64,000 nt of DNA from Cyanophora paradoxa CCMP329 (lineage: Eukaryota; Plantae; Glaucophyta). Below the pieces are notes generated by a model. That model saw only the letters and a list, made by a program, of their open reading frames with translations. It was not told where the DNA came from and did not search any database. The position numbers and the translations under genes were made by a program. This document shows, piece by piece, positions 26,116 to 62,183 of the stretch; position 1 is the first letter of the stretch, and each line of letters starts with the position of its first letter. The DNA lies in NCBI GenBank assembly GCA_004431415.1, contig QPMI01000436.1:124001-188000 (forward strand), in the 5' to 3' direction.

Positions 26116-26430
26116 CCGGCCGGCCGGCCACAGGCCGGCTCCCCCAGGAGACAATCGCGATTATTGTTTGCGCCCTTCAATAGCAATTTTTATGCAGGTT
26201 AACGTTGGCCGCCCGGCCGCGACGCGCCTCCGCGCCGCTCCGGTCCGCTGCCCGCTGCGCCTCAGTGCCGCGCGGCGAGCCGCGTCGACGTCGCTACCAC
26301 CGTGACTCCGCCGCATGCGCAGCGCCCCACCCAGCGCGGGGCGAGAGAACGGTTGCATGCGCACGGAGGGCTGCAGTTATATATAGAGCGCTTCATAATA
26401 TGCTTGTCTAAGAGACTGGGAGGACCGCCG

Positions 26431-26481
<51 letters not shown>

Positions 26482-26615
26482 GGGGGGGGGGCGCCCTGCA
26501 GCTGCGCCTCGCTTCTGCGGCTTATTTGGCTATATATATGATTATATAGATATACATGGAATCAGCAGCTGGTATACGTACGGTTTCCGCGGAGTCCGGA
26601 GTCGGCGTCCGCTTT

Positions 26616-30617: not shown

Positions 30618-30809
30618 TGCTTTTTACTTTTCACTATTAACGTTGACGCGACGTCGACGTCGACGTTTCTAGTTCCATTAATTTGTGCAACTGTGTACGT
30701 CGTGACGGTACGGTTGATTTTACTAATTATAAGTTGATTTTTACTTTAGCGTAGTACCTGGTACCCGGTTCAAGGGCCGGTTGTGCAGTGTGCACAGTGC
30801 ACGCCGCTG

Positions 30810-38945: not shown

Positions 38946-38978
<33 letters not shown>

Positions 38979-40363
38979 GCGGGCGGCGCGCACGGAACTC
39001 AAGGATGAACGCGTCCTCCAGCGTCGGGATGGGCGCGTCCCGCTCGTCCCGCAGGCTGCCGGCGCGCGTCAAGCGGCACCGTGGCGGGCGTGGGGCGGGG
39101 GCGGGCACCTGAACTCGATGTGCTCGGGCAGGGCGTCGAGGGCGGCGTGCAGGGCACCCGCCGAGCCCTTCGCCTGCGCCGGCAGCGCCGCCCGCACCGT
39201 CGCCTCCGCCAGCGGCGCCACGCCCGCCGGCAGCGCCGCCGTGTGCCGCCCGAAGTACGCCCCGCCAGGGAAGACGAGCCGCGCGCCCGCCGGGATGGGC
39301 GCCCGCCCTCGTTCCGCACCGTCAGCTCCAGCTGCAGGTCCTCGCCGAGCCGCAGCCGCCCCCGCCCGCCGAGCAGCAGCCGCGCGCTCACCGCCGCCAG
39401 CCGCTCCGGCGTCGCTCCCGCCGCCCCGCCCCGAACGACCCCTCCGCCACCCGCCGCAGCTCGCCCGCCGCGAAGACCCGCCCCGCCGTCGCCACCTCCC
39501 GCAGCCGGCCCGCACCCGCCCCCGCCCGCAGCGTCACCGCTGTGACCGTCGCGCCGCTCTGGCCCCGCCGCCTCAGCCCACAGCGAAACAAACGAGAGAG
39601 CCGCGCGCACCTCGCGCCGCAGGCGCTCCGCTGCAGCCGCCGCCGCGTCCTCGCCGCCCGCCGCCGCGCCCCAGTCCGCCGAGGTCAGGACCCACACGTG
39701 CCGCTGCGCCTCCGCGGCCGACTGCGAAGCGAAGTGCTCCCCGCACGCCTCCAGCGCCGCCGACAGCCCCGAGCCGGACCCGCCGTCGCCAGCGCCGGCA
39801 CCGCCAGCTACAGGCTCTGCCGATACGCCCTCAGCGCTGGAAGCGCACCGCGCGCACAAGAGCCGTGCAGAGCGCACCCTCGTGCCGCCCGAGCGCCTCC
39901 TCGACGCCCTCCCGCGACGCGGTCAGCGGGCAAAGCAGCTCCGCGCCGCCGCGCCTGCAGCGGACGACGCCAATCCGGCAAGGCGCGCTGCGGCCGCGAT
40001 CTTTGACGCTGCCGAGCGCCGCAGCGAGCACCTCCCTCGCCGCGCTTCGCTGCAGCTGCCAGGCCGGGCCCCCGTTGGCGTCGCTGACATGTAGCGCGGC
40101 CGTGGCGCCTTCTGCGCTTCGGATCCCGTCCGCGCCGCTTCCGTCCGCGCCACCGCCATGCAGGACCTGCGCGCATGCGCGCGCGCGGGCGTCGGAGTCA
40201 GCGGTCCGGTCATGTCATGACCAGGTCCGAATTCGAAGACCGCGCGCGCGCGCGAGCGAGAGGGAAACATGAATGGGCGCACGATGATGACGTCCCGCGC
40301 TGGCTGATGGAGCGCCGCCGGTCTCCCGCGCAGGTGCCGCGCCGGCGCCTCGAGCTCCCGCAT
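33790..40363 (-). CDS. Paralog B: vWA-like + Ig/FW-like + IFI44-like GTPase + tandem CCCH + 5 LOTUS/OST-HTH-like domains
   Basis: MRELEAPARHLRGRPAALHQPARDVII|...; HILLCGPHGSGK|SSFFNSL...LPVAIFDSWG...IHAVVFIV...SQVD...LENY...AADDF; ICYRS|VVGKLPCNDMECARKIH|DKRKLKGFACTKFWTEHSCPRSHPECW|FNH; repeats such as LASTLVGVLQERGGSALASALGSAFALK|VGKKFKELSSEPSMEAFCLERPHLFSV. The last exon VAAPYRPPLFKYGAAS* is homologous to that of paralog D. A few G-run frameshifts. Confidence 0.85.
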
Positions 40364-40721: not shown

Positions 40722-43700
40722 TTAGGCTCTCTCTCCGGCGCGCCAGCGGTCGATGGCGGTCTTGAGGGAGCGGTTGGGGACGACGTCGCGCCCCACCACC
40801 TGCGGATCCGGAGGCCGTCAGCTGCAGGCCGGCCCCCAAAAACAAATTTGCCCGGATGGGTCGGATAGGTGGGCCGCCCCCGGCGGGCCGGGGCCCGCGG
40901 CCGCAAACAAAGATATTATTCCTTAAACATCTAGAGTTTGGGCGATTTCAAATGGAATGCATCTTTGGATTGAAGGTTGAAGGGCGCCTGCATGAGAGAA
41001 AGAGACTCTTCGGCCCGCACCTGCTCGCCGGTGAGGGGGCTCTTCCCGTGCCACGCGAGCCAGTTGTCCACGGCGCCCCGCTGCGCCCGGCGGTAGGCTC
41101 AAATTCAAAGGGGCGGGGCTCGCGATCGGGGGCGGGGGCGGGGCCCGGGGCGGAAATGCTGGATCCGGAAATCTTCTCACCTCGTAGCTGTGGCCCGTGC
41201 CGTCCGCGATCATCACCGGGTCTGCACGCACGTTAATAGAAGGCTCCGATTCGAAGGCTCGTTAATAGAATTTTAACTAGATTCATAAAGGGGCTCAGGT
41301 TCAGTTTGGGCGCACCGACCATGACCTCGTGGGTGATGGGGCACAGGAACTCGGGCGGGGGCGGTCCGCTGGGGCGCGCCGCGAAGGGCGCCGGCAGGGG
41401 CGCCGGCGCGGCCGCCGGCGGCGGCACGAGGGGCGGGGGCGGGGCGGGGGCGGAGCTGCCCAGTCTGCTGCCGGCGGGCTCGGCCTCTGGACATGCGCCG
41501 GGCGGGCGGCGGCGGCGGCGGCGGCGGCGCCGGATCGAGAGGGCGCGGCCTTGGGCTTGGGCACCGGTTGGGCCGGGGCCGGGGCCGGGGCCGCGGCAGG
41601 CTTCGATCTGGCCTTCGGGGCTGCGGGCGCTGCCGGCACCGCCGCTGGAACCGCCCGCGGCGCGGCCGCCCGCCCGGCGAGGCGCACGGTCGCCTTGTCT
41701 CCGCTGCCCGACACCTCAAAGAGATCCGGGAATCTGATGGGGAGGTTACAATAGACTCAATAACAACAAGCGTATAATAACTTGGATAGGGTAATCATAT
41801 AATAATAAAGCTATAAGCGTTTCCAGGAGGGGTGAGGCCTCTCGGCGCCACGGTACTCTATTGGCAGGACACGGGCCCCCCCACTGCCCGAGGGATGGTC
41901 GGGGGCCTGATGGTCTTATAACAATGATAGCGACAGCAAAGTCGAATAATAAGAGGTCCGGGAATGTGATCACGACGAGACGTGAGCGGTTTTCCCATCA
42001 AAAACTCGAGTATTTAGAGACGACCCGCACAGAAGCTTTAGGGTGGCGAGCAACCCGCATAAGAACCTCGCCGAGCGGGGTCGTGTGCGTACCGCTTCAG
42101 GAACTCAATAAGCTTGGCGCCCGGTCCCGCGGACTCCGAAAACGACTGTCCCGCCTGCGCTCGCATTTCATTGCCAGAGAAGGTTTCGGGCCACGCATTT
42201 CATAGTAAGATCAGGTTTCGGGCGAGAGGAGTACTAGTGTCCGCAGTTTTAAAAAGAAAGAGAAAGCGCGCCTTCGCCTTGAAGCCGTCGACCAGGGTGG
42301 TGAGGGCGACCGACGGGAGGCCCCGGCGGTGCCAGTCGCTCAGCACATGCACGAGGAATGCCTTCGTCATGACATCCGATCCCGCGGCCGGGGCTGCGGC
42401 TGCAGGCCCCGCCTGCAACTCCACGTGCACTGGCCTCGCGGCCGCCGGGCGGGGCGACAGCATTGAGGACGCGGACGTCGCAGCAGACTCTGCCGTCGGC
42501 GCCGTTCGCGCTCGCTCCGCTGCCGCCCGCGCTGGCGCCGGCACCGGTGCCGCTGCGCGGGGTGGCTCCAACTCGACCGGTCCCGCCAGCCGCGGCGACA
42601 GCACCGACGACAAAGCTGCGGGAGGTACATACGCCGCCGGCGCCGTACGCGTGCGAGGTGGTTCCGCTGCCGCCAGCTGCAGCGCTGGCACCGCTGTGCG
42701 CGATGGCGCCGCTGCCGCCGCCCCGCGCGGCGCAGCCGAGCCCACGAGGGAGACGACGCAGGCGCCGCCGGCGGCGCCCACGCTGGCGACGGCGAAGCGC
42801 TCGGGGTGCGCCAGGCAGAAGGACAGGATGCTCGGCTGCCGGTCGCTGCTGAGCTCCTTGAACGGCTTGCCCGCCTGCGAGAATGGTAGCACCTCAGTCA
42901 TAAACAGGGCGCATTGAATTCGAGTAAATTCCAACAGACGATTCCAGCGACCTTTTTCGAAAATTCCTTGCCTAGAGAGGAAACGTCAAGCGAGCCCGCG
43001 GACTCCTGCAGGATGCTGGCAAGGGTCGCCGCCAGCGTGCTGGCCGGCCTGCAGGGCAAACGCTTAGCCGGCGGGACGTTTGATTGCAGTAGGGCGGGCA
43101 GCGGCTGTAGCTTCGTATACGTATACGTATATACTTATGCACCATGGGCTCGACGAAGCCGACGGCGGCTTCGAGGCCTGGGCATGCGCAGGAGCCGTCG
43201 GCAGCTGCAGCCCAGGGACGAGCTGTGCGACGGAGCTCGACAGAGCCGACGGAGCGTGCGCTGGAGCTCGAGCCGCATTGACGAGGCAGAACGTCTGCGG
43301 CCCGGGCGCCCCGGTGCCGGCGACGCGGAAGAGGTCGGGGCGGCGCTGGCAGAACTGCGCCATGCTCGGCTGTGCGCTCACTTCCTTGAACTTCTTCCCC
43401 GCCTGGGCTCGAGATGGGTTAGAGAAGCGCTCGCAAGCGATCAACAGCGTTAATATTGCATACCGCCACGGCGAATGCAGGGCCTAACGAGCCGCCGTTG
43501 AGAGAGCCCCCCGCGCTCTCCAGAACCTTTACCAACGTGGAAGCGATCTGTTCTTCCGACCTGAGAAGCCGAAGAGATGAGGGAGGAAGCGGAAGATCTG
43601 ATCATGAGGTTCTGTACCAAAATGAATGGAGGTGTACAGACGGTGATGCAGCCTTCGACTTCGCTGGAGGGGCTACGAACTGCTGCGGCGGCGCAGACAC

Positions 43701-45264
43701 GGACGGAGACACAGCTCCACCGCTCCGCAGGGACACTCGAATGTCGTTCTCGCGTCCCGTCACCTCGAAGAGATCGGCGTGCCTGCACGATCGAAAGTTT
43801 AATGCATCACGATCACGCCCAGAACAGGAGCGGGGGAAGGCGGAAAAGCTCACCGGCGGAAGTGGGACGAGAGCTGCGCGACGCCCAGCTCCGACGGACT
43901 CTTGCCGGTCTGAGGAATTCGTATTCGATGTCAACGTGAGCGGCAAATGAAGAAGGATATTCCGGCGATCGGCGCGACCTTCTTCCTGAATAGGATGCCG
44001 AGTTCCGTCGTTGACAGAGCCGCGCCGGCCTCGCGCAGCACAGCCGCAAAGATTTCATTCACGTCGCCGGCGCCGCCGACACCTGCGGTTGCTGGCGCGG
44101 GGAGCAGGCCGGGAGCTGCTGACGTAACCGTTTTTGCCGCAGCGGCTGGTGATCGCGCAGCGGTTGGCTTCTGTGCGAAGGATGCTGCGGGGGCGGCAGC
44201 TGCCGCAGCCACAGCTGGAGCGGCGGGAGGAGCCGCCAGGCACTCCGCCTCGAGCCGCTGGCGGAGGCGGGCGAGCTCTTCCGGCACGTTTGTCTTGTGG
44301 TTGAACCTGCAAAAATCGAATGAGAAGGAGACATCGTATTAAATTATAAGTGTCGATGTAAACTTCAGGCAAGATCGAAATTAGTTAAACCCTTACCAGC
44401 ACTCTTTGCCCGACCGCCCGCACTTTCCGGTCTCCCAGAACTTGGTGCAAGCGAGGCCTTTCAGCAGGCGCTTGTCTGCAGGCTCCGAATTAATCAGATC
44501 TGGACGCGAGCGGCGTCAAAGAATTCCAATACGAATATGTACCGTGCAGTTTCGGGCACTTAGAGTCTCTGCACCCGCTGTACATGGGACTGATCTGCGG
44601 GCGAAGCTTCAGCCAGGCTGCATGGGTCAGCCCTTATAGGGCCGCGTACCGCAAACACGCAGAAGTCTCCGAGCTTCAAGGGGACATCTGGAGGCTTGCC
44701 GTTCCCTTGTGCAGCAGACTTGGATGGCGGGGCGGGCTTTGCGGCGGGGGGGCCGGGAGTAGCAAAAGTTGCGAGAGCGGGGGATGGCGCGACCGCCGGG
44801 ACCGGTGCGGCGGCTCGAGCAGGGGCCGGCGGCGTGGCTGGCGTGGCCGGAACGGGCCGGCGCGGAGCAGATGGACGAGGAGTTGCCGCGGGCGGCGCGA
44901 GCGGAAATGGGCATGGGACGGGCCCGTTGGCCTCCATGCAGAGGAAGTCGTTGGCGGCGCGGACGGCGGCGAGGGCGATCCGGTACACCGCCCGGTCGAT
45001 CCCAAACGACTTGTCCTGCGCCCGGCCCGTCACATCGGGATCGGCCGCAGCGCTACAGGCGGGGCCGAGGCCGCGGGCGAGGGCGGGGGCGGGCCTTGGT
45101 GTCGCAGTAGTTCTCGAGGGTGAAGACGTTGGCCTCGCTGATGGCGAGCAGGGCGCAGAGCTTCTGGCGGTACTCGGCGAGCACCTCCACGTCGCCCCCG
45201 AGCCGGTCCACCTGCGAGATCGCCACCACCGCCTTCCGCTCTGCCCCGCGCCCCGCCCGCCTCA

Positions 45265-45299
<35 letters not shown>

Positions 45300-46139
45300 G
45301 GGCGGCGCACTGAGGGCGAGGGTGGCGGCGCGGAAGAGGGCGGCGAAGCGGTCGAGGGTCTCCGAGCGCAGGTCGAGCTCCGAGTACGACACGATGAACA
45401 CCACCGCGTGGATCTGCCGCGGGGCGAAGTTCGCCGGTGCAAAGCTCACGCTGACTTCCGCCCCGCGCACCTTGCGGGAGGGGTCCGCCTGCAGCCGCTG
45501 CCCGCGCGCCTCCAGCGCCGCCCGCAGCCCCTCCGCCGTCACGCACTCCTGCCCGCCGCGTCAGATGGATCCAAAAAACCCGAGCACAACCGCGGACCTC
45601 CATGGGCCACTGGAGGGGCAGGGCGCCGTGCAGCATGAGCGCCATCTCCTCCCCGCGGTAGTTCGCCCTGCGCCGCGTCAGGCCCGGCCCGCGCCGCCAC
45701 TCGCCGCGCCGCCCGCACCCGTCGATGCCCCAGCTGTCGAAGATGCCCACGGGCAGGTCTGCCAGCCCCTCGTGCCTGCCGGCCGGCCGTCGGGCGGTGC
45801 CGGCCTCTGCCGCCAGCGAACGAGCCGGGCACGCGCACCGGTCGAGGCGGAAGCGGAAGAACTCATTTGTGACGTGCTCCGTGTGGCCCCCCGCGACCGC
45901 CGGCGCCGCCACCCGCTCGCTCAGGCACGACACCAGCGAGTTGAAGAACGAGCTCTGCGCCGCCGGTCAGCGGCTGGCCCGGCCATGACGCGGGCACACG
46001 CGCCTTGCCGCTGCCGTGGGGTCCGCAGAGGAGGATGTGGGCCCCGCCCGCCGCGGCCGCCGCCGGCGCCGCGTCGAAAATGTCGCCCGCAAAGTCCTCT
46101 GCCGAGCATCCGCTTCAGACAGCGGCGGCGGCGGCGGTG

Positions 46140-46179
<40 letters not shown>

Positions 46180-47524
46180 GCGGCGCGCACGGAACTCGAG
46201 GACGAACGCGTCCTCCAGCGTCGGGATCGGCGCGTCCCGCTCGTCCCGCAGGCTGCCGACGCGCGTCGGGCGGCGCCGGGGCGGGCGTGGGGCGGGGCCG
46301 GCACCTGAACTCGATGTGCTCGGGCAGGGCGTCAAGGGCGGCGTGCAGGGCGCCCGCCGAGCCCTTCGCCTGCGCCGGTAGCGCCGCCCGCACCGTCGCC
46401 TCCGCTAGAGACGCCACCCCCGCCGGCAGCGCCGCCGTGTGCCGCCCGAAGTACGCCCCGCCAGGGAAGACGAGCCGCGCGCCCGCCGGGATGGGCGCCC
46501 GCCCCTCGTTCCGCACCGTCAGCTCCAGCTGCAGGTCCTCGCCGAGCCGCAGCCGCCCCCGCCCGCCGAGCAGCAGCCGCGCGCTCACCGCCGCCAGCCG
46601 CTCCGGCGTCGCTCCCGCCGCCCCCGCCCCGAACGACCCTCCGCCACCCGCCGCAGCTCGCCCGCCGCGAAGACCCGCCCCGCCGTCGCCACCTCCCGCA
46701 GCCGGCCCGCACCCGCCCCCGCCCGCAGCGCCACCGCCGTGACCGTCGCGCCGCTCTGGCCCGCCGCCTCAGCCCGCAGCGCAACGAACGAGGCGGCGAG
46801 GCGCACCTCGCGCCGCAGGCGCTCCGCTGCTGCTGCTGCCGCGTCCTCGCCGCCCGCCGCCGCGCCCCAGTCCGCCGAAGTCAGGACCCACACGTGCCGT
46901 TGCGCCTCCGCGGCCGACTGCGAAGCGAAGTGCTCCCCGCACGCCTCCAGCGCCGCCGACAATTCCGAGCCGGACCCGCTGTAGCCAGCGCCAGCGCCGC
47001 TAGCTACAGGCTCTGCCGCGACGCCCTCAGCGCTAGAAGCGCACCGCGCGCACGAGAGCCGTGCAGAGCGCACCTTCGTGCTGCCTAAGCGCCTCCTCGA
47101 CGCCCTCCCGCGACGCGGTCAGCGGGCAGAGCAGCTCCGCGCCGCCGCGCCTGCAGCGGACGACGCCGATCCGGCAAGGCGTGCTGCGGCCACGATCCCC
47201 GACGCTTCCTAGCGCCGCAGCGAGCACCTCCCGTGCCGCGCTTCGCTTCCAGGCCGCCCCGCTGTCTACATGGTTGGCCGCGGCGTGAGCGCCTTCCGCT
47301 TTCCCGTCCCGAGCGAGCGAGCTACTTCCACACACGTCATCGCCGTGTAGTACCTGAGCCCGCGCGCGTGCATTCGCGTCAGCGAACGACGCTCGTGTGC
47401 CGCGGTGCATTCCGGTCAAAAGCCGGAACGCGAAGGGGAGCGCGCGCACGATGATGACGTCCCGTGCGGGTTGCAGCAGCGCCGCCGGCCTCCCACGCAG
47501 GTGCCGCGCCTCCGGATCCCGCAT
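40722..47524 (-). CDS. Paralog C: vWA-like + Ig/FW-like + IFI44-like GTPase + tandem CCCH + 4 LOTUS-like domains + C-terminal U-box
   Basis: Same N-terminal core; FCVFA|ISPMYSGCRDSKCPKLH|DKRLLKGLACTKFWETGKCGRSGKECW|FNH; four LOTUS-like units; U-box PPPEFLCPITHEVMV|DPVMIADGTGHSYE|RGAVDNWLAWHGKSPLTGEQ|VVGRDVVPNRSLKTAIDRWRAGERA*. Confidence 0.88.
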
Positions 47525-47858: not shown

Positions 47859-50800
47859 CTAGGAGAAGGAGTAGGCCACGAGGTCGAGGAGGGCGCGGAC
47901 GGCGTGGCGGTTGACGTCGTGCGGGAGAACGCTCTCCCGCCAGTGCACCAGGCGAACGATCTCCCGGCGATCCCGTACCCCGGACGCGATCTCGCGGTTC
48001 GCCACCTCCCCGAACTTGGCCGCGTCCATCCCCTTCCGCAGGATCACGAGCACCACGTTCTGCACCCCTGCACCCGCCCGCAGCGTCAGTCACAGGCTGT
48101 TCGACCGCCGAACAAGAGAGGAGAAGGCGGACCACGGGCGTGAAGATCGTCCACGGCCCGCCGCTCGGGCACGTCGACGCGGTCCGAGGCTGCGTGCCCG
48201 ACCACCACGACGGTGGCCGGCGCGGCGCCGCCGGCTTCGCCGCCCCAGTCGTCCGGCCTGGCCCACGCGAACTCGAAGGGAGGCCCCGGGGCGCCCTCGT
48301 CCTCCTCTTCCCCACAGAAGCGGTAAGAGAGGGCCTCAAGCAGATCCCGCGGGTGGCTTTCGCCCTCCCGCGCCGCCACAAGCGGCACCGTTCGCTTGAG
48401 CTTTGGGTTCGAGTTCGCCGCGGGGGGCGCCGGCCCCGCCGGGGCGGGAGGCGGCTCCGCCGGGCCCGCCGGCCGCTGACGCTGTGCCTGATGCCGTCCG
48501 ATCAATGGCGCGGGGCGAGAAGAAGGAAGGAGGAGGGGGATAAGGGGGGTACAGGCGCACGAGGGCCTCCTGGAGACGCTGCAGCTCCCCCCTCAGACCG
48601 ATGTTCTCCCCCCGCAGTCGCTCTGAGGCAAAGACGAGGGTCATACGGATAGCGGGGATGGGGGGTTCGTGGAAGGGGTTGCAGATGGGGGTACAGGGAA
48701 TGGGTTGGTACAGGGGATGAGGGAGTGCGAGGAGGGGTGGGGGGTATTGTTATTACAGGCGGGGTACGAAGTACGGGGTACGGGGGTACTAAGAGAGTGC
48801 TATGAGGGTGGTACGGGGTTACGGCGGTACTGTGGGGGACTACGGAGTACGGGGTACGGGGTACTAGGGTACGGGAGAAAGGTAATATTAGGAGTACGGG
48901 GTACTACGAGGGTACGGGGGTACTGGGGTACGGGTTACTAGGGGTAGGATGGTAATACAAGTGACGGGGTACGGGGTACTAAGAGGGTACTAGGAGTACG
49001 GGAGGAAGGTTTATAGGAAGGGAAAGAGTTGGAGGCGGGTCAGGGGGTGGGAGGGGAGGGGTGGGAGGGGGACAGGGGGACAGGGACGGGGGGGGGGGGG
49101 GGGGGGGAGGGAGCGGGATTGGAGCAGGAGAGGGTAGAGGAAGAGGGTTGGGGGGGGGGGGTGAAGGGTGGCGAAGGGGGCCAGGAGGCGGGAGGCAGGG
49201 GGATTGGGGGTGGGGGGGGGGCGGGGCGGGGGCGGCGGGAGGAGAGGGGGGGCAAGGGCCGGGTACGACAGGCGCGCACCGATCTCGCGGCGGAAGCCCT
49301 TCTCGGCGTCGGCCCGCCGAGCACCCTCCTCCACCCTTGCCGCCTGCGCTCATATGATCAGAGCCGCGCCGGCGAGTCTTGAAAGGGGTCTTATCAAAAG
49401 GTCCGGGCGAGCGCGCGCCTCGAGGTGCCTGGAGCGCTCGCGCTCGCGCTCGAGCTCCCCGCGGACGCCCGCTAGCTGCGCCTCCAGATCCCAAACCCGC
49501 GCCTCCAGCTCCGCTTCCCTGTACCCCGCCTCGGGGGGGCGGCCTTCCGAGGGGCCGTCGGCCGCGGGGGGCTGCTGCATGGACGCTCCGTCCGGCTGGG
49601 CTGGAGGCTCCGCCCCCCCGTGGCAGCCGTCTTCTCCTCCGGCTGCAGCCGGCGCGCCGCTCCTGTGCTTGTTTCGGCCGCCCTTCGGTTTTCGGCCGGC
49701 CGGCTTGCCCCCCTCCGAAGGCGGATGCTGGGCGGCCGAGGGGCCAGCTGCAGGCTCTTGGACGGCCGGCTGATCGCTGCTCGCCTCTGCTAGCGATTGC
49801 AGGGGCGGCGGCGTTGGCGGCGGCGGCGGCGACGGCTTGTACATGTCCGCTAGTCGCGCCAGCTCCGTCAACGCCGAAGCCGACCGCAAAGGCTGAGGCT
49901 GGGGCCCGCCGCCGTCAGGCCCCCCCGGTCCGGCCGGCGCGTTGCTCCCGCGCTCGCCCCGCTGTTGCTGCCGGCCGCGGCTGCCTCGCGCGCCCCTCCC
50001 CCTGCTGCCGCCGGCCGCGTGCTGCTGGTGCCCCTCCGGCGCCGGCGGGATCGGCAGCTCCTGGACGATCGGCGGATCGTTGTACCCCTGCTCCCCAGCC
50101 GACGGTTCTATGGGGGCGGAGGGCTGCTGCGGGGTCGAAGGCGTGCCTTCCTCCGCGCCCGCCTCGCCGGCGGCGGCTGCGGACGCCCCGCCGCTGCCGC
50201 CGCCGCCGCCGCCGTCCCGCCAGCCGCGCGGCGCCGGCTGCCGCTGCTGCACTGCCGCGCCGAGCGCCCGCTTCGAAAGCTCCGCAGAGGGGGCCATCTT
50301 GTGCGGCTGCCGCCCGGCTTGGGAACCGCCCCTGGTCCTCTCCTGCGCGCGCGAATCGCCGCGGCCGGCGGACGCCGCGGGGCGAGCGAGGCGGCCTGCG
50401 GGGGACTGCGGCGTGAGGAGAGGTCGAGGGGAGAGGCACAGAGTACTCGCTGACAATTGCAGAGCGTGCACTTGTCGCCGAAGCGCTTGTCAGGTTGGCC
50501 CCCGCAGTCTCGACAGGCTGCCTTCGCGAACTCTTCGAGCAACGCCGAGCCGGGGGGACTCCAGCCCCCCGAGCCCTCCTTAATGTTGCGTAGCATGTCC
50601 TGAAGGGTGCGGAGGACCGCCGCCTCGGATCTAATCCAGCAGTGGCCGAATCAGCGCTCAAAACGAGCAGCGGCACGGGCAATCGAGCGCACCTATCGCG
50701 GAGCGCTTCCACAGGTCCTTCCCTGAACCAAGCGACTCTCTTCGTCACCTCGTAGAGGCAGGTGAGCAGCTCCGGCGCTGTGTTGCACGTTGGCCAGCCG

Positions 50801-51307
50801 TTGATAAGTGCTCGGAAAGCCCGGAGAGTCTTCTGCGCGCGCTGTTGAGCCGTCTGAGCGTTCTCTTCCTGCGCGTCTCTGCGCGCACTGCATCAGCCGC
50901 GTGCGATTCTCTGCATGCGCCCAGTTCCCAGCGCAAAGCGCACCCGAGCGTGGGCAAGACCTGTCGAAAGAGCGCCCGCGTCTCGGGCGGCACGGCGCGC
51001 TGGAGCAGCTGCTCATGGAGATCGATGACTGATGATATCCATGTAGGTGTTATCTCGCACTCGCGTGCTTCTTTGCCTGGACACCAGGCGCCGACGAGTC
51101 CAGAGACCAACTCCAGCACATCCAGTGCCTCCTCCTCGTTAAATGCGCTGCAAGAGCGACCCGCAGCGTCAGGAAGCGCTTCGGTCGCGCTGAGCGAACT
51201 GATCGGTCGCACCTGAGACCGCGCAGCAGTTTTTCGATCACCGCCTTCTTTTCTGTGTCGATCATCGCACCGAGCCGCTCTAGCACCCGCACCGGAATCC
51301 CGGGCAT
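47859..51307 (-). CDS. Hypothetical protein: helical N-terminus, low-complexity linker, coiled coil, C-terminal alpha/beta domain
   Basis: MPGIPVRVLERLGAMIDTEKKAVIEKLLRGLR|...EEEALDVLELVSGLV...; EAELEARVWDLEAQLAGVRGELERERERSRHLE; ERLRGENIGLRGELQRLQEAL; ATVVVVGHAASDRVD...|GVQNVVLVILRKG...IVRLVHWRESVLPHDVNRHAVRALLDLVAYSFS*. Confidence 0.65.
48650..49262. repeat. Purine-rich low-complexity intron with GGGTAC-type repeats and G runs
   Basis: Many ggggtacg/gggtact units between exons of the 47859-51307 gene. Confidence 0.85.
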
Positions 51308-51373
51308 CGCGCCGCCGCCGCCGCTCAGTCGGCCCAGGGGTACGCTGTCGTTGGAGCGGTCGAGCTCTCGCGG
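51308..51373. promoter_or_regulatory. Very short divergent intergenic region (putative bidirectional promoter), also copied upstream of paralog C
   Basis: The predicted ATGs at 51307 (-) and 51374 (+) are 66 bp apart; an inverted homologous copy lies at ~47525-47610. Confidence 0.45.
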
Positions 51374-54300
51374 ATGCGGGAGGCGCGGCACCTGCGCGGG
51401 AGACCGGCGGCTCTGCTGCAACCCGCGCGGGACGTCATCATCGTGCGCGCGCTCCCCTTCGCGCCCCGGCTTGTGCGGAAAGCACCGCAGCACACGAGCG
51501 CCGTTCGCTGACGCGAATGCACGCGCGCGTGCTCAGGTCTTACACGGCGATGACGTGGCTGGCAGCGGCTCGCTCGCTCGGGATGGGAAAGCGGAAGGCG
51601 CTCACGCCGCGGCCAACCATGTAGACAGCGGGGCGACCTGGAAGCAAAGCGCGGCGAGGGAGGTGCTCGCCGCGGCGCTCGGAAGCGTCGGGGATCGCGG
51701 GCGGGGCGCCCCGTGCCGGGTCGGCGTCGTCCGCTGCAGGCGCGGCGGCGCGGAGCTGCTCTGCCCGCTGGCCGCATCGCGGGAGGGCGTCGAGGAGGCG
51801 CTCCGGCGGCACGAGGGTGCGCTCTGCACGGCTCTCGTGCGCGCGGTGCGCTTCTAGCGCTGAGGGCATCGCGGCAGAGCCTGTAGCTAGCGCTAGCTAT
51901 AGCGGCGCTGGCGACAGCGGGTCCGGCTCGGGTCTGTCGGCGGCGCTGGAGGCGTGCGGGGAGCACTTCGCTTCGCAGTCGGGCACGGAGGCGCAGCGGC
52001 ATGTGTGGATCCTGACCTCGGCGGACTGGGGCGCGGCGGCGGGCGGCGAGGACGCGGCGGCGGCTGCAGCAGAGCGCCTGCGGCGCGAGGTGCGCCCCGC
52101 CCCCTCGTTCGTTTCGCTACGGGCTGAGGCGGCGGGGCCAGAGTGGCGCGACGGTCACGGCGGTGGCGCTGCGGGCGGGGGCGGCGGTGGGGGCGGGCGG
52201 GCTGCGGGAGGTGGCGACGGCGGGCGGGTCTTCGCGGCGGGCGAGCTGCGGCGGGCGGCGGAGGGTCGTTCGGGCGGGGCGGCGGGAGCGACGCCGGAGC
52301 GGCTGGCGGCGGTGAGGGCGCGGCTGCTGCTCGGCGGGCGGGGGCGGCTGCGGCTCGGCGAGGACCTGCAGCTGGAGCTGACGGTGCGGAACGAGGGACG
52401 GGCGCCCATCCCGCCGGGCGCGCGGCTCGTCTTCCCCGGCGGGAGTACTTCGGCGGCACACGGCGGCGCTACCGGCGGGCGTGGCGCCGCTGGCGGAGGC
52501 GACGGTGCGGGCGGCGCTGCCGGCGCAGGCAAAGGGCTCGGCGGGCGCCCTGCACGCCGCCCTCGACGCCCTGCCCGAGCACATCGAGTTCAGGTGCCCG
52601 CCCCGCCCCACGCCCGCCGCGGCGCCGCCCGACGCGCGTCGGCAGCCTGCGGGACGAGCGGGACGCGCCGATCCCGACGCTGGAGGACGCGTTCGTCCTC
52701 GAGTTTCGTGCGCGCCGCCCGCCGCCGCCGCCGCCGTTGCCGCCGCCGCCGCCGTCGTCGTTCTGACGCGCCGCTCGGCAGAGGACTTTGCGGGCGACAT
52801 TTTCGACGCGGCCCCGGCGGCGGCCGCGGCGGGCGGGGCCCACATCCTCCTCTGCGGCCCGCACGGCAGCGGCAAGGCGCGTGCACCCGCGTCATGGCCG
52901 GGCCAGCCGCTGACGGGCGGCGCAGAGCTCGTTCTTCAACTCGCTGGTGTCGTGCCTGAGCGAGCGGGTGGTGGCGCCGGCGGTCGCGGGGGGCCACACG
53001 GAGCACGTCACGAACGAGTTCTTCCGCTTCCGCCTCGACCGGTGCGCGCCCCCGCCTCGTTCGCTGGCGGCAGAGGCGGGCACCGCCCGACAGCCGGCCG
53101 GCAGGCACGAGGGGCTAGCGGGCCTCCCTGTTGCCATCTTCGACAGCTGGGGCATCGACGGGTGCGGGCGGTGCAGCGCATGGCGGCGCGGGCCGGGCCT
53201 GACGCGGCGCAGGGCGAACTACCGCGGGGAGGAGATGGCGCTCATGCTGCACGGCGCCCTGCCCCTCCAGTGGCCCATGGAGGTCCGCGGTTGTGCTCGG
53301 GCGTATCGGGGCTATCTGACGCGGCGGGCCGGGCAGGAGTGCGTGACAGTGGAGGGGCTGAGGGCGGCGCTGGAGGCGCGAGGGCAGCGGCTGCAGGCGG
53401 ACCCCTCGCGCAAGGTGCGCGGGGCGGCAGTTGGCGTTAGCTTTGCACCGGCAAACTTCGCCCCAGTCGACGTGACCTTTGCGTCTTTGACTGTGCCCCG
53501 CGGCAGATCCACGCGGTGGTGTTCATCGTGTCGTACTCGGAGCTCGACCTGCGCTCGGAGACCCTCGACCGCTTCGCCGCCCTCTTCCGCGCCGCCACCC
53601 TCGCCCTCAGTGCGCCGCCCGTGCGCGGCGCCAGCGGCGGCGGCGGCTGAGGCGGGCGGGGCGCGGGGCAGAGCGGAAGGCGGTGGTGGCGATCTCGCAG
53701 GTGGACCGGCTCGGGGGCGACGCGGAGGTGCTCGCCAAGTACCGCCAGAAGCTCTGCGCCCTGCTCGCCATCAGCGAGGCCAGCGTCTTCACCCTCGAGA
53801 ATTACTGCGACACCAAGGCCCGCCCCCGCCCCCGCCCGCGACCTCAGCCCCGCCTGTAGCGCTGCGTCTGATTGTAAGGTACGCAGGACAAGTCGTTCGG
53901 GATCGACCGGGCGGTGTACCGGATCGCCCTCGCCGCCGTCCGCGCCGCCAATGACTTCCTCTGCATGGAGGCCAACACCGCCGTCCCCTGCCCCTTCCCG
54001 CTCGCACTCGCGCCGCCCGTGGCAGCTCCGGCAATGGCGGCAGCCCCTCGTCCAGCTGCTCCGCGCGCACCTGCTGCGGCCGCGTCATCCAAACCACCAG
54101 TCCCTGCTCGAGCCGCCGCACCGGTCCCGGCTATCGCGCCATCCCCCGCTTTCGCAACTTTCGCTGCTCCCGGGCACCCCACCGCAAAGTCTGCCCCGCC
54201 ATCCAAGTCTGCTGCACAAGGGAACGGCAAGCCTCCTCCAGCCGCGCCTGCCACGCCACCGGTCCCTCCTCGAGCAATCGCATCCTTTGCCTCTCCGGGG

Positions 54301-57300
54301 AGCTCTGCACCAACAACCAAGTCTGCTGCGCAAGCAAACGCCGAGCCCGCATCTGTATCTCTCACAGGAAATTCGAAGGCCGCGTCACCGCCCGTACAGG
54401 GCAGTTCATTTTGGTACATACAGCTTCTCAAATCCTAGAGCCTCTGCGTCTTTTCTCACCCTAATGATGTAAATATTTTCGGCTTCTCAGGTCAGAGGAG
54501 CAGATCGCTTCCACGCTCGTCAAGGTTCTGGAGAGCGCGGGGGGCTCTCTCAACGGCGGCGTGATAGGCCGTGCATTCGCTATGGCGGTGCACAGCGTCC
54601 AAACCGCTGATTGCGAGCGCTTCTCTGACCGTTTCCGATCCCAGGCGGGGAAAAGCTTCAAAGATGCCAGCGGGCAGCGGAGCGCGGCGAAGTTCTGCCA
54701 GCGCCGCCCCGATCTCTTCCGCGTCGCCGGCGCCGGGGCGCCCGGGCCGCAGACGGTCTGCCTCGCAGATCAGACCGGCCGTCCTGCCCCTTCGAGTTAC
54801 TGGTGGCTTCCTATCCTCGGCCTCATCAAATCTGCGCGTGTTCCTGAATCATCTTCGATATTTCTCCAGGCTGCCGGAGAAGCTAGCTTCGACCCTCGTG
54901 AGCCTCCTGCAGGGCTGTGGCGGCTCAGCATTGGCCTCTGCACTGGGCGGCGAATTTGCCTTTGAGGTAATGCTGACGCGAATAACGCTGAACTCGGGCG
55001 CACCTTGATCTCGATTCAGGCAGGAAAGAAGTTCGAGGAACTCAGCATTCAGCCCAGCATAGAGATTTTCTGCATTGAGCGCCCGCACCTCTTCTCCGTT
55101 GCTGGCGCCGGCTCTGGCAATGGGAGATGCACCGTCTCTCTCAAAGACTTCGCGGTCGCAGTGCCAGCAGCGGCATCAGCACTCTCAGCACCGGGCTTGA
55201 GACTGCAACTTCAAGGCTGCAACTTCCAAGACAAGGCTGCAACTTCCAAGACAAATTCATCTGCAGCGCCCAAGGCTTTCTCGTCGCCCGCACGTGCCTC
55301 CGCCCCAGGTGGGCAGTTGTGCATGTACATGTACATGCGAATGCTGATGGTCGCCTATTCATATGCCTAGATCCTGAAGACTACTCGCTAATCTGTCAAC
55401 GATCGGTGCTCTATCCTCTCGCTCTTTCCCTTCACATCTTGCGCTTCATCTTTCGCCGGATTTGAGATGAGCTGCGATGCCAGATTGTCTTCAACCAACC
55501 GTGTCTCGACAAGGACTGCACAAAAGTCCACGGTGAATATTATTTGGCCTGAAGCGATGTTTAAATTTGCGTACCAGTGCACGCGATTGTTCATGCCCTG
55601 AAATGGTTTTTGCGACGGCAGATAAGCGCCTCCTAAAAGGCATCGCGTGCAAGAAGTTTTGGACGGACGGCTCGTGTGGGAAATCGGGCAGTGAATGCTG
55701 GTGAATTGGTTTTGGTTTCCAATCTTTGATTTTCCGTTGTTTTAAATTTCGATCCGATTCATTGTGATGCACAGGTTCAACCACGAAACGAAGTCGCCTC
55801 ACCTGCTAGCGCTGGCCCTCATCCGCCAGCGGCTCGAGGCGGCGTGCTTGGCGCCGAATTCGAAAGGCCCGGCGGCCCCTCGGCCTCCCGCGATCGCGAC
55901 AGCTGCAGTCCCCGCATCGTCGACGCCGACAGCCGTCGCGAAGGCCTCGTCGCCGTCAACGCCCGTGCCTGGCGTGCCTTGGTATGCTCGCCTTCAGGAT
56001 TTTATCGATGTGCGAGTGCACTCAAAACCGCTGCTACTCCCGATCGCAGGTCCGAGGACCGGCTTACGTCCACGCTTGTCAAGCTGCTGGAGGACGCTGG
56101 GGGCTCCCTCACTGGCGCCGGCATCGGCGCGGGCTTCAGGAAAATGGTGCTCCGTTCTATAATTATGTGTAGTCATTTTGCAAGTTTGTAAACGCTTCTC
56201 GTTCACTACCGCCTCTCACTGCTTAGGCGGGGAAGAGCTTCAAAGAGGCCAGCGGGCTGCCGAGCATGGGCTGGTTCTGCCAGCGCCGCCCCGACATCTT
56301 CCGCGTCACCGGCGGCGTGGGCGAGCGCGTGCAGCAGTCGTTCCATCTTGCTGCTCACGGCTCGTCCGCCGCTCCTTCTCCCCCCGTGTCAAAGCACGCA
56401 AGGCCAGCCGCAGCGCAAGCGCACGCCGCACCCCCTTCAGCGTCTCCCCCGAGCAGATACACAGCAGGGCAAAGTGGACAATCAATCCCGACCGTCATGC
56501 GTAAGGCCGGATGCCGCAGCGAGAACGCGCACGCGTGCAAAGCGCTCGCTGACTGACACACTCTCAGCGGTGGCGCTGGTCGTGGAGATTCTTGTGGATG
56601 TGCTGCGCTCGAGCACCCGCACGGGCCTGCCCAAACGCATGAACGCTGCTGATCTCGCCCAGGTGTTCAACGTTCGGGTGCGCCCCATTAAATTTGGCGC
56701 CTGTTAGTCATATATATATTTCTCATGAATTCTGCCCTAAGGTCGGCAAGTCGTTCTCCGCCGCTTTGGGCGAAAACATCTCGCCCGTCGCTTTCTGCCA
56801 GCGGTTCGAGATTTCATCGAAAATTTAAACCCGCCGCGCTCGAAGTAATCGTTTCACCGTCAACGCCATTATCCGCAGCTATCCGCACCTGTTCGCGATA
56901 TCCTCCTACTCTGACAATAGTGGTCAGAAGTTCGTTGACGTGAGTCTTCGGGCCGACGCTCCCGTATCTTCCAGAGGTCTGCCCTAGACCTTCCATAACC
57001 GATCATGAAGCGCGTATGGAGCGCTGAGAACTCAAATCGACTGCAGACGCCAGCGGTGTGCCCCCCGTCATCGAAGGCATCATCCAGCTCGAGCCGCCGC
57101 CGCTTTCGAGTTTCCCAACGATCGCTTCGAACTCGGATATCGATGCGGGAGCTTCGACCTCTTTCCCGCCGGGCTACTATCCGGTCCCACCGCCTCCCGC
57201 GATCACTGCGGCCCGCAACCAGCCTTCCGATCCTGTTCCTAAACCTGCCCCCGTTTCTCGGCCTAGTCCTTCCGCGCCGCCCTCCGGATCCCAGCCCACC

Positions 57301-57824
57301 GGATTTGTACCCGCATCCGGATCTTCCCAACACATGCCGGATGCCGAAATCGTGGCGGCTCTGCGGGAGTGTTTGGGGGAGAGCGGCGGCTTCGCGCAGC
57401 AGTCCGTCCTCGCCTCCAAGTTCCACAAAAAGGTGCGCCGGCCCGTAATGTTATCGAATTTGCGCGTTAATATTTATATTCTAACTGTGCTCACCCCGCC
57501 AGACGGGGCGCACTTTTAAGGAGGCGGCCTGGAAGCAAAACTTCCTCTCCTTCATCCGGCGGTAAGCGCGGCTTCGACTTCATAATCCTTGTATTTAAAA
57601 GAAATACGTAATCTATCATTTTGGATTTAAAAGAAATACGTAATGTATCTATCATTTTGATTAGGACAATCGACTGACTCTCGGATGCCCCACGCGCCCC
57701 TGGCCATCTAGATACCCCGGGGACTTCCGGCTGGTGCCCTCGGGGAAAAGTGCGGACTCGAGGAACACGTCGGCCGACATCATCGCCCTCGCGTCGGATC
57801 CGCTGTCGGAGGCGGCGGCGGTCT

Positions 57825-57859
<35 letters not shown>

Positions 57860-60800
57860 GCGGCGGCGCCCTCGCGACTGGCCCTCTCGCGATCGCAGGC
57901 TGCGGCGCCGACGGCGGCGCCGGCGGCGCCGGCCGGCGGAGATGTTAATGTTGCATGCGTAGGGCCGGCCGCGGCGGTACCAGTGTCATCTCCGCAGCCC
58001 GCAGAGGCGTCGCTTCCCCTCCGGTTTCTAAGGAGGGCGCCTCTCCTGCCCACCCCGCAGCCGCCGCAACCCTCGCCTGCCGCTCCAGCCCAGCCTGCCC
58101 CCGCCCCCAGCGCCAGCGCCAGCCGGGGTCCCTCCGGATCCGCGGCGCTGCGCATGCCGGAAGGGGCGATCGTGGCGACTGTTGACTCCAAGGCAGCAGC
58201 CGCCGCCATGGCTTCCGTGCACGCGCCGTCCTCGCTGGCTTCCACCCCGGGCCCGGCCTCGCAGGCCATGATCAGCCCGCTCCCTGTCACGACGGCCGTG
58301 GCCGCGCCGGCTGCAGCGGCACCGGCGCCGACGCCGGCCGCTCTCCCATTGCCTCCGCCTCCGCAAACGATGGCCGACCTGGAGGACTCCTCGCTCATCT
58401 GCCACGGCGCGGTGCGCGGCATCGAGTTTCCGTCGCCTGCTCGCGATTGCCTTTGCATGTCAAGTCTAGATCTGGCCGGGGGCTGATTCTGAGCTGAACG
58501 GCAGATATTATCTGGACAGCCGTGCCTCGACAAGAGCTGCGCGAAAATTCACGGTGCATAATTATATTGCGTCGGTTTCATTTTGGGCCGCGCTCATGGG
58601 AGGCTGCATGTGCAGACAAGCGCCTTCTCAAAGGCATCGCGTGCAAGAAATTCTGGACAAGCGGTTCTTGTGGGAAATCGGGCAGCAAATGCTGGTGAAT
58701 CTCTTTGCAGATGCTATTCGAATTCGCGCACTTGTTTCCATATGTTGATTCTGGATAAACTTTTGTTTTCCAGGTTTAACCACGAGACGAACTCGCCCCA
58801 TGCACTCGCCCGCATCCGTTTGCGGCTCGAGGCGGAGTGCTCGCGATCGGGTCTTCCCGCGGCTTCAGCTGTGGCAACGGAGTTGGCGGCGGAGCGGTCG
58901 GCGCAGTCGGTAGCAGCCGCGGCCGACGCCCCCGCGCATGCGGCAGCCACAGCAACAGTCGCTGCTCCTGCGACAGTCTCGATTGGCAACGATGCTCCTG
59001 CAGAAGCTGCAGCGGTCGCTTCTGCTGTTGCAGCTGGCGCTTCTGCGGCCATTGCGACGTCGACGGCAGCGGCTGCAGCAACGGTCGCTCCTCCGACAAC
59101 GGTCTCAACGGTCAACATCGCTTCAAATGCTGCAGCGACCGCGTCCAAAGCAGACGCTACTGCTCCCTCAACAGCGGCCGCACAGAAGCTGGCACTCGCG
59201 CCAGCAGTGGACCTCAAGACACCTGCAGCTACGGCTGCAGCTGCAGCTGCCGCCGAAGCATCTGCAGCCGCGCCTCCGTCTCAGGCCGCGGTCGCTTCCA
59301 AGGCCTCTACCACCCACTCGGAGGCGTCAGTCACGAAGACATACACGGCCACAGAACAAGCGCCTGGGCCGGCGTACGCCCTCTCCAGGCCTGCAGCTGG
59401 CCAGAGCCACGGGGACGGCTACCTCAACAAGATTTTCACAGAGTTGTTGGGCGAAGCAGGCGGTTTCCTATCTACCGCCCAACTTGGCTTGCGTTTTCGG
59501 GAGAAGGTCGGGGAGATCGCGGCCGAGCTGCTGTTACCTCTCTCCTCGGAGTGTGGAATGGACAGGCTCTCGGCCCACTTGCGCCGGTGGGAACCCGTCA
59601 CTGCTTTCCTTCGATCTCTTCTTTTGAACAGTCTGTTGTGCAGATTTCCCGACCTCTTCGACATTTCTGGGCAGGAAACCGCCTTTCGAGTGTCCCTGCG
59701 GAGCGGCGTTGATGGGACGGGTCTGCGGCCGCCTGCGACCGCACCGGTACCGGCGATACCGAGCAAACCAGTTTGGTGCGCCTCTCAAATTTTCCTTTTC
59801 TCCTTCTCACTTATATCCCGCCCAGCATCCCGCCACCACAGGATTGTGCACACATAAATTCCCAGATAGCAAAAGCTACGCAGTTGCCACAGCCCGAACG
59901 TGTGCTGTAACCCGGCCCTCCCATCGACCGCAATGGGCACGTGCACGTGTCTGAGATGGATCGATATCGCAGTGGCGGAGCAGATCGCTGAAACGCTGGT
60001 CGACATCCTCCGCGCGCGGGGGCCGCAGGAATGCGACGTGGCAACACTCGCACAGGCGTTCGACAAGCAGGTACGCGTGTAACGCACTTTATAATAATTA
60101 GCTAGATCTTAAAAGCCCATTCGGAATCGCGACCTCGAATTCGAATTCGAATTGGCTGACCGGGGCCGTTGCCGCAGACCGGCAAGTCCTTTGCTGCAGC
60201 TCTTGGGAAGAATGCCAACGCATCCCTGACCAGTTTCTGCATGTGGTTCGCATGGAATTATATTTCCGCTTCCGCTTTACATTTGCGCTGCAAATGCCAT
60301 TAACAATTTTAATTCGGGCTACTCTCTCCACCGTCAGCTATCCGCACCTGTTCTCGCTCCGTTGTAATTGCAAAAGCGGGAAGAAGCTTAAGCCTATGGT
60401 ATATGTGACGCTTCGGTCCGATGCCGCTGCCGGTACGTATACGCTTCAAATTAGTTTCACGCTTTTGGGGTGCTGCTTACTGTGGGCTTCGCAACGGGCG
60501 TGCAGGAGTTTCGAATTCTCTGCTCCCATCTCCGCAGCCCGCAGCCGCATCGCTTCCCCTCCGGCCGCCGCCCTTCGTGCCCGCGGCCGGCGCCGGGGGG
60601 ACGGCCCTCCTGCCTACCCCGCTGCAGCCCTCGCCTGGTTCTGCAGCTGCCACCCAGCCCGCGTTCCTTGGACCTCCCCTTTCATGGACCACGACCTCCC
60701 TCGCGATCGGCTTTAATGTCTCCAGCCATGAACCACCGCTTTCATTTGTGGGGCTCGACGCTCGTGCTCCAACCAACGCTCCCGCAGCCGCCCCATTCTT

Positions 60801-62183
60801 CTTCTCGCAGCCGACATGTACAGCCCCATCCACGCATATGGCTGGAGCGACTCTGGATTTCCCGCCGGGCTACCATCGGCTGCAGCCTCAGACGCAGCCG
60901 CAGCCTGCCCCCGCGCCCAGCGCCGCCAGCCCGCGGCCGGGTCCCTCGGGATCCGCGGCGCTGCGCATGCCAGAAGGGGCGATCGTGGCGGCGCTGCAGG
61001 AGTGCCTGCGGGAGGCCGGCGGCTCCGCCCCGCCGGCCGCTCTCGCCTCCGCCCTCCGCGCCAAGGTGCCCCAACTTCAATTCATATAACTTCTTCTCAG
61101 AGTCTTCTTCAAGGCTTTAGCTTCGTCCTCTGCCAGGTTGGGCGCACGTTCGTGGAGGCGGCGGGGGACCCCAACTTTCTCGCCCTCGTCCGCCGGTGGG
61201 CAGATCTGGATCTAGAGCCGTCGAAAATTCAACCAAAATACTCTAGATCTTAGCAGTCGAATTCTACTTCATATAGCTCTAGAGATCATAAGCTTCGCTA
61301 TTTGATCGTTTACGTTATCCCTCGTCCGCCGGTGGGCAGCTGCAGACTCGGTGCAGAGCCGTTGAAAGGAGAATAGCAATTCTACATTACTTTAGCAGTC
61401 GAATTCCACTTCATGTAGCTCTAGAGAAAATAAGCTTCAAATAGCTCTGGAGATAATAAGCCACTTTCCTCGCCCTCGTCCGCCGGTGTGCAGATCTGGA
61501 TCTAGAGCCCTCGAGACGAGAATAGCAGTCGAATTCTACTTCGTACAGAGATAATAATAAGCTTTGCTGTAAAATCATTTACGTTATCACACACACACTA
61601 AGAGAATGTTCGGACGTGTCCCTCGGGCTCTGTCTGAGTGTGCCTTTGTCTGTGCGCGCAGGCACCCCGGGGAATTCCGGCTGGTCCCGGCGAGCTCGAG
61701 CCCCGCCCCGGGCCTGGGCCAGGCCGGGTGCGAGGGTGGCATCGCCTCCGCCTCGGCCTCTGCCGGATCCGGAATCGTTGCGATCGCCCTGGCGTCGTCG
61801 CAGTCGGCCGCACTGCCGCCGGCTGCTCCTAAGCCAATCGCCTCGAGCTCGTCAGCGTCTTCACAATCACCGGCCCCGTCTCCCTCGCCCCACAAAGGTG
61901 CGCGCGGCCGGCGCCCGGCCCGCAGCCACCCAAGCGTGATTCAAATTTGATCGAATATTGAATATATACTGGTGCTGACGACGGCCGGGCGCGCGCAGTG
62001 GCCCCGCCCTATAGGCCTCTCCTGCACCGCTACAGCCCCCCAGCATGCGCAGCGGCGCCGGCGCCCGCGCCCGCGCCCGCGGCAGCGGAGCAGCCAGCTG
62101 CTGTGGTCATGGCAGCCGATGGGTCCGACCAAGGCGCGGAGCTCGCCGAGGGCCGAGGCCAGCGGTGCGCCGGCGGACTATAG
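51374..62183 (+). CDS. Paralog D: vWA-like + Ig/FW-like + IFI44-like GTPase + 8 LOTUS-like domains + 2 tandem-CCCH units
   Basis: Core 51374-53965. LOTUS-like units at ~54490, 54870, 56050, 56570, 57333, 59415, 59965 and 60967. CCCH pairs LICQRS|IVFNQPCLDKDCTKVH|DKRLLKGIACKKFWTDGSCGKSGSECW|FNH (55370-55790) and LICHGA|ILSGQPCLDKSCAKIH|...CKKFWTSGSCGKSGSKCW|FNH (58375-58795). Apparent G-run frameshifts near 52180-52460. Confidence 0.82.

Follow-up and report, generated by a model that had tools for sequence, protein, structure and literature searches.

A family of multidomain proteins in the glaucophyte alga Cyanophora paradoxa with a G domain resembling that of animal IFI44 and IFI44L

We analyzed a window of 64,000 nucleotides (nt) from the glaucophyte alga Cyanophora paradoxa CCMP329 (contig QPMI01000436.1, positions 124,001-188,000; coordinates below are those of the window), in which three gene copies, called A, B and C here, encode large proteins with a P-loop G domain. 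A sequence-only reading of this DNA had described the domain as IFI44-like and outside animals, and the latter part is correct because the organism is a glaucophyte. The explanation that we favor, with good but not full confidence, is that these copies belong to an expressed family of five paralogs, whose G domain is truly homologous to that of IFI44 and IFI44L and for which we propose a role in switching or assembly. Judging from the sequence comparisons, the algal G domain appears to be truly, if remotely, homologous to that of IFI44/IFI44L (about 22-26% identity) and is closer to it than to any other family tested. In their architecture, the algal proteins are not IFI44 orthologs.

In copy C, the G domain is encoded on the forward strand by eight short exons (52782-54000) separated by introns of 49-92 nt, and the GC content around this locus is 70-76%. 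The exons, together with the two introns that have GC-AG ends, are the following:

52782-52876 (+), exon e1: last part of the linker, then the first half of G1 (…HILLCGPHGSGK); joint 52876>52926 in runs X1-X3
52877-52925 (+), intron of 49 nt, GC-AG: splits the P-loop between GK and SS; joint 52874>52924, whose two ambiguous letters allow GC..AG ends; missing from DNA run X11
52926-53041 (+), exon e2: SSFFNS… and the G2 Thr (EHVTNEF)
53105-53161 (+), exon e3: G3 (LPVAIFDSWGID); joint 53161>53213 seen
53213-53282 (+), exon e4: ANYRGEEMALMLHGALPLQWPME; nucleotides 100% identical across copies A, B and C
53337-53414 (+), exon e5: helical insert preceding strand 4; joint 53414>53507
53507-53609 (+), exon e6: IHAVVFIV strand, then a helix; nucleotides 100% identical across A, B and C; joint 53609>53672
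53672-53817 (+), exon e7: G4-like AISQVD and the TLENY strand
53818-53886 (+), intron of 69 nt, GC-AG: joint 53815>53885, with three ambiguous letters
53887-54000 (+), start of exon e8: final helix of the G domain (…RAANDF…PCPF), then an Ala/Pro-rich tail up to 54414

All the motifs quoted in the sequence-only reading are present, in order, in these exons (HILLCGPHGSGK/SSFFNSL, EHVTNEF, LPVAIFDSWG, IHAVVFIV, AISQVD, TLENY and RAANDF), and the motif order that it gave for human IFI44 agrees with that of non-human IFI44L (ILLVGPVGSGKSSFFNS, LPFMLCDSMG, IHCVAYV, TKVD, (E/G)NY and RAADDF). In an alignment of the algal G domains, G1 (GPxGxGKS), the conserved Thr of G2 and G3 (DSWG) are invariant across all five paralogs. 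The residue that follows G3 is hydrophobic in the alga (Ile or Val), as it is in IFI44L (Leu), and corresponds to the catalytic Gln of Ras. At G4, the Asp is kept and the Lys is replaced by Gln or Tyr, giving SQVD, SYMD or SYAD. In copies A, B and C, G1, G2 and G3 are intact, as the sequence-only reading claimed, and G4 reads S-Q-V-D, with the Asp and without the Lys.

The five proteins were recovered with HMMER, using as a query a stop-free read-through of e2-e5 (52926-53414, with the introns in frame) against 1.84 billion representatives. All of them (P0001-P0005) are EukProt EP00741 models of Cyanophora paradoxa located on three contigs, and no protein from another organism was found at E 0.001 with this partial query in that set. 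P0001, with its G domain at about residues 339-590, is 100% identical to the copy C sequence within the exons. The models P0002 and P0003 correspond to copies A and B, respectively, and P0004 (532 amino acids, aa) and P0005 (894 aa) are more distant paralogs encoded elsewhere in the genome.

The relationship with IFI44L emerged when a profile of the five Cyanophora G domains was compared with 5.8 billion proteins, from which the 8000 candidates sharing most five-residue words were scored. Among these 8000, the matches beyond the family itself were three proteins, all mammalian IFI44L, with 61-70 bits, E from 4e-11 to 4e-14 and 73-76% query coverage: hamster IFI44L (64 bits, E 2.7e-12), blue whale IFI44L (61 bits, E 4.1e-11) and P0006, a protein from a Logan contig that clusters at 90% with IFI44L of human and monkey (70 bits). 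Pairwise comparisons were consistent with this result. For instance, BLASTP of P0001:320-600 against whale IFI44L gave 62 bits, E 2e-15 and 23% identity over 277 columns, extending from before the P-loop to the last helix, and hhalign aligned the algal and IFI44L profiles with a probability of 99.0% and E 3.8e-18 over 236 columns, reaching the C-terminal RAAxDF helix. Furthermore, searches based on language-model features showed that the algal domain and whale IFI44L share largely the same neighbor clusters. The sequence-only reading had named AIG1, Era/MMR_HSR1 and septins as the families whose closer match would speak against it, and the profile and hhalign scores place IFI44L ahead of all three.

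The alternative that best withstands these data is that the domain is a generic GTPase of the TRAFAC/MMR_HSR1 type, the likeness to IFI44 consisting of the P-loop flank (GKSSFFNS) plus universal G-domain features, without specific ancestry; we consider this unlikely, though it deserves a detailed answer. In its favor, both the algal proteins and IFI44L give sub-threshold matches to RsgA_GTPase and MMR_HSR1 in Pfam, and the word-based choice of candidates favors proteins with the same P-loop flank. The best Pfam matches of the algal domain reached 21.9 bits for RsgA_GTPase (cut-off 30) and, in P0002 and P0004, 13.7 bits for MMR_HSR1 (PF01926, cut-off 21.9), and the G domain had no match above cut-off in Pfam, NCBIfam or PADLOC. 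However, the alignments with IFI44L run end to end (236-277 columns) up to the RAAxDF helix, and when the P-loop and everything N-terminal to it were removed, the profile still gave 19-28 bits on seven IFI44L proteins, compared with 5 bits for the best of 2100 shuffles. In contrast, no other family in PDB, Pfam or NCBIfam exceeded 22 bits, even with the P-loop included. AIG1 (PF04548) gave no match at E<=0.1 in P0001-P0005, and septin (PF00735) gave no Pfam match in the same proteins, the best septin sequence in PDB reaching 11.4 bits on the P-loop only. The algal profile against all PDB sequences reached at most 19 bits, again on the P-loop only (ABC transporters, dynein, RsgA, septin and IRGQ), and the single-sequence PDB search likewise returned P-loop matches only. 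No solved structure of a relative was found in the PDB searches. Pfam scans of single-exon translations and of the in-frame read-through gave only P-loop noise. Compared with GIMAP/AIG1, septin, Era/EngA (MMR_HSR1) and RsgA proteins, then, the algal domain shares the TRAFAC fold and the P-loop but lies below the cut-off of every family. The best match in the NCBIfam and PADLOC scans was a weak one between PADLOC mad8, from the MADS defence system, and P0001:325-592 (18.3 bits, E 3e-4 for one protein, residues 30-255), which probably reflects general P-loop NTPase likeness only.

The predicted structure bears on both readings. The AlphaFold2 model of P0001:325-592 has a predicted local distance difference test (pLDDT) score of 63 and a predicted template modeling score (pTM) of 0.71, and its strands and helices are arranged in the order expected for G domains; the domain is a P-loop GTPase fold of the TRAFAC type. 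Foldseek against PDB returned generic G domains only, with template modeling (TM) scores of at most 0.48 (G-alpha, EF-Tu, MglA, GIMAP2, septin 9 and FeoB), a result that also fits a generic GTPase; GIMAP2, septin 9 and EF-Tu fell between 0.40 and 0.48. In the ESM Atlas, however, IFI44 clusters outrank all other GTPase families: IFI44/IFI44L clusters from chordates and molluscs occupy each of the nine nearest rows (TM 0.65-0.68 over 212-221 residues), and the next family, a bacterial HydF-like GTPase, has a TM of 0.54.

Several considerations weigh against the homology and function that we propose and should be kept in mind. The identity to IFI44L is low (21-27%), the choice of candidates by shared words favors proteins with GKSSFFNS, and the reference set consisted of mammalian IFI44L only. 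When P0005:340-680 served as the query of a single-sequence search, the paralog P0004 was the only match, and IFI44 did not appear at E<=0.001. The fold likeness to the IFI44 models is not independent evidence, because the alignment used for the model held five IFI44L rows. In Pfam, there were no matches to TLDc in P0001-P0005, while IFI44L gives weak TLD matches in the same scan. With the G4 Lys missing, the algal domain may not be specific for guanine, and even for animal IFI44 the biochemical role is poorly defined.

With respect to expression, spliced contigs in the RNA-like runs X1-X3 skip 52591-52643, 52877-52925, 53162-53212, 53415-53506, 53610-53671 and 53818-53886, six introns whose ends are, in order, GT..AG, GC..AG, GT..AG, GT..AG, GT..AG and GC..AG. 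The first of them lies just upstream of the G-domain exons, and none of the six joints is present in the DNA-like run X11. Six of the eight intron positions are therefore confirmed by spliced contigs, including the two GC-AG introns, which occupy the same positions in copies A and B; for the other two (53042-53104 and 53283-53336), which are not among the joints listed, the support comes from the EukProt model, the GT..AG ends and a conserved frame. Several of the contigs with these joints bear letters of the copy B or copy A type (52972 T>C, 53723 C>T, 53737 A>G and 53783 G>A), and thus they document intron positions that are common to the paralog family. Contigs free of differences cover the copy C tail (53922-54412) and the exons downstream of it, with joints 54587-54643, 54802-54868 and 54965-55017. 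Taken together, the contigs of B or A type and those specific to copy C indicate that at least two copies are transcribed. All introns at the locus are very short (49-94 nt). One further joint, 52839>53819, skips 979 bases and was present in all four runs, the DNA run among them. Its anchors are only 18-22 letters long and are separated by additional letters, and an artefact of repeats or low complexity in the GC-rich sequence is its most likely source.

Copies A and B have the same exon structure as copy C. The further copies described by the sequence-only reading are real, and both are encoded on the minus strand (46096-44905 for B, 38921-37738 for A). A self-comparison of the window showed that the repeat unit covers about 2.7-3 kb, with 89% DNA identity to C for 47616-44690 (-) and 84% for 40343-37680 (-). 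The corresponding features are:

44905-46096 (-), G-domain exons of copy B
37738-38921 (-), G-domain exons of copy A
51374-61196 (+), full gene model for copy C (P0001): 40 exons, 2316 aa; weakly vWA-like at the N-terminus, followed by the beta-sandwich, the G domain, a pair of CCCH modules and numerous LOTUS-like repeats
40934-47524 (-), full gene model for copy B (P0003): 1351 aa; C-terminal U-box encoded at ~41317-40934
33133-40363 (-), full gene model for copy A (P0002): 1420 aa; CCCH and LOTUS/OST-HTH repeats

In the G-domain exons of copies A, B and C, the synonymous divergence (dS) is 0.12-0.18 and the nonsynonymous divergence (dN) is 0.018-0.044, with dN/dS of 0.15-0.25; these values were computed per exon, and only the counts were summed. 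The introns between the same exons are only 67-80% identical between copies, with indels. Purifying selection or gene conversion had been suggested as causes of the near-identity of the cores, and the data bear out the former. In e4 and e6 (53213-53282 and 53507-53609), there are no changes at about 43 synonymous sites in copies A, B and C, and yet the introns that flank these exons differ by substitutions and indels. Full identity of exons that sit between diverged introns gives no support to simple gene conversion, whose tracts do not fit as the cause of the core identity; purifying selection combined with strong codon bias more likely accounts for the identity of e4 and e6. The contrast that the earlier reading drew between near-identical cores and diverging tails was also borne out, as the tails after …PCPF can be aligned between C and B up to ~54236, while that of A is unrelated from ~54049.

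Another possibility is that the genes are not an old eukaryotic family but were exchanged horizontally with an animal lineage, in either direction, or entered the assembly as contaminant DNA. The named relatives found in the searches are all animal and the distribution among eukaryotes looks patchy, as such an origin would predict, but we consider it very improbable. The genes share the composition of the window (70-76% GC), their many very short introns, including those of the GC-AG type, are spliced in the RNA of the organism itself, the five paralogs lie on three contigs of one genome, and their identity to the animal proteins is just 21-27%. Moreover, metagenome contigs of another eukaryote, with a GC content of 0.48, carry the algal module of beta-sandwich and G domain. 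Equally hard to sustain is the idea that the copies are decaying duplicates or mispredicted models without a working enzyme, since the possible fusion of two genes in P0001, the barely detectable N-terminal vWA of the window copies and the loss of the G4 Lys are set against open reading frames in every exon of copies A, B and C, a dN/dS of 0.15-0.25, G1-G3 motifs that are invariant in five paralogs and the existence of spliced transcripts.

The metagenome contigs just mentioned (L002-L005, L008 and L009; prefixes JAABUK, JAABUP, JAABUS and JAABUY, with JAABUK010000525.1 and JAABUK010002971.1 among them) come from one project, have a GC content of 0.47-0.48 and contain introns. They match the algal type with 74-79 bits versus 30 for IFI44L, and they encode the upstream beta-sandwich-looking domain in the same exon as the P-loop; the algal-type domain lies, for example, at L004:3731-5176 and L009:4010-4816. 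Thus, a second eukaryote has the algal type. Pfam found nothing informative in the open reading frames of L004. Other metagenome contigs, of lower GC content (L007 and L010-L012; 0.35-0.38), match IFI44L better. For instance, L012:300-1076 is an intron-less open reading frame (GC 0.37) that covers the whole G domain and matches IFI44L with 96-100 bits and 27-28% identity. In two of the neighbor clusters from the language-model searches, plants (Streptophyta) are the commonest taxon, which hints that the family uniting IFI44/IFI44L with the algal proteins may be wider than animals and Cyanophora. A scan of viral contigs gave no relative, and the sole locus from the scan of bacterial and archaeal genomes (L001) was rejected, as it encodes a MutS-like ATPase with the P-loop alone in common. 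In the literature searched, a check that did not extend to InterPro and PANTHER, we found no paper linking IFI44 to Cyanophora or to protist or algal genes.

The domains that accompany the G domain set the algal proteins apart from IFI44. The copies in the window have, in order, a vWA-like N-terminus, a beta-sandwich-looking domain, the G domain, an Ala/Pro-rich linker, tandem CCCH fingers and LOTUS/OST-HTH-like arrays, while P0005 has vWA (55 bits), a beta-sandwich-looking domain, the G domain, a CCCH finger (zf-CCCH) and a U-box (53.7 bits). The beta-sandwich-looking domain, which is unassigned, is 40% identical between the window copies and P0005 over 102 residues. The vWA domain (PF00092/PF13519) is barely detectable in the window copies, with VWA_2 at E 0.024 in P0003, and the N-termini were not aligned by BLASTP. 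LOTUS/OST-HTH (PF12872) reaches 34-37 bits in P0002 (cut-off 23.8), and the remaining repeats are recognized by self-similarity only. The U-box (PF04564, cut-off 21.4) is present in P0003 (copy B), with 33.5 bits, and in P0005, and it was not found in copies A and C. Within copy B, it is encoded (41317-40934, -) just upstream of the start of copy A. In P0001, a second block of CCCH and LOTUS follows a long Ala/Pro-rich stretch (58505-61196, +), and this model may represent two genes fused by the predictor. On the side upstream of copy C, RNA-like contigs (50800-51325) show CT..AC joints at 50879-50943 and 51148-51212, which indicates a spliced minus-strand gene directly upstream. The GC content of the window swings from 82% in 24001-26000 to 51-54% in 26001-34000, with 63-76% elsewhere.

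Compared with IFI44 and IFI44L, the algal proteins share homology over the whole length of the G domain, with GPxGxGKSSFFNS, the G2 Thr, D(S/T)xGxD, (R/K)IHxV, (S/T)xxD, NY and RAAxDF in common, as well as the hydrophobic residue after G3 and a predicted fold that is nearest to the IFI44 cluster models. They differ in the G4 motif (SQVD, SYMD or SYAD in the alga versus TKVD), in an extra helical insert that lies between G3 and strand 4, and in the absence of TLDc, which is the N-terminal domain of vertebrate IFI44, with vWA-like, beta-sandwich, CCCH, LOTUS and U-box domains fused to the G domain. Some animal IFI44-like clusters are also without TLD, for example those with Ig domains. Furthermore, to our knowledge, glaucophytes have no interferon system.

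The other comparison is with proteins that combine CCCH and ubiquitin ligase (E3) domains, such as those of the Makorin and Roquin types, and with LOTUS proteins such as MARF1, TDRD5/7 and Oskar, which are established families; CCCH, LOTUS/OST-HTH and U-box domains are building blocks of RNA-directed regulators and ubiquitin ligases. The C-terminal halves of the algal proteins likewise combine tandem CCCH, LOTUS/OST-HTH and, in some paralogs, the U-box. Nevertheless, we know of no family of the Makorin/Roquin type or with LOTUS domains that carries a G domain or vWA, and the combination was not found in the searches made.

Given these domains, a plausible mechanism can be outlined for the paralog family. 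From the conservation of its motifs, the G domain would bind a nucleotide through G1, G2 and G3. It would do so without a catalytic Gln, like IFI44L, and its base specificity might be relaxed, since the G4 Lys is absent. The domain could then work as a nucleotide-dependent switch or assembly module, and this switch might gate a scaffold that binds RNA through the CCCH and LOTUS domains or, where there is a U-box, a putative ubiquitin ligase. RNA surveillance or cell-autonomous defence would be a plausible setting, the only hints of a role in defence being the analogy with IFI44 and the tandem arrangement of a locus whose tails diversify.

In vertebrates, few antiviral genes are induced as strongly as IFI44 and IFI44L. 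In cnidarians and molluscs, too, IFI44 homologs form part of the antiviral response (PMC13319465, PMC12943528). A glaucophyte homolog would be evidence that the G domain predates animals or, alternatively, that it was transferred between kingdoms. Tentatively, and with more doubt than conviction, one may go further and imagine that the IFI44-type G domain is an old pre-animal module common to Archaeplastida and animals, whose native partners were RNA-binding domains (CCCH and LOTUS) and the U-box, that IFI44 and IFI44L descend from a GTP-gated effector of RNA surveillance or defence, and that the triplicated Cyanophora locus is an algal locus of cell-autonomous immunity. Whatever its origin, the alga offers a natural experiment on the partners of this domain, as the G domain is covalently joined to predicted RNA-binding fingers, LOTUS repeats and a U-box, and this fusion suggests that IFI44-type GTPases may be connected with RNA and ubiquitination, a link that can be tested.

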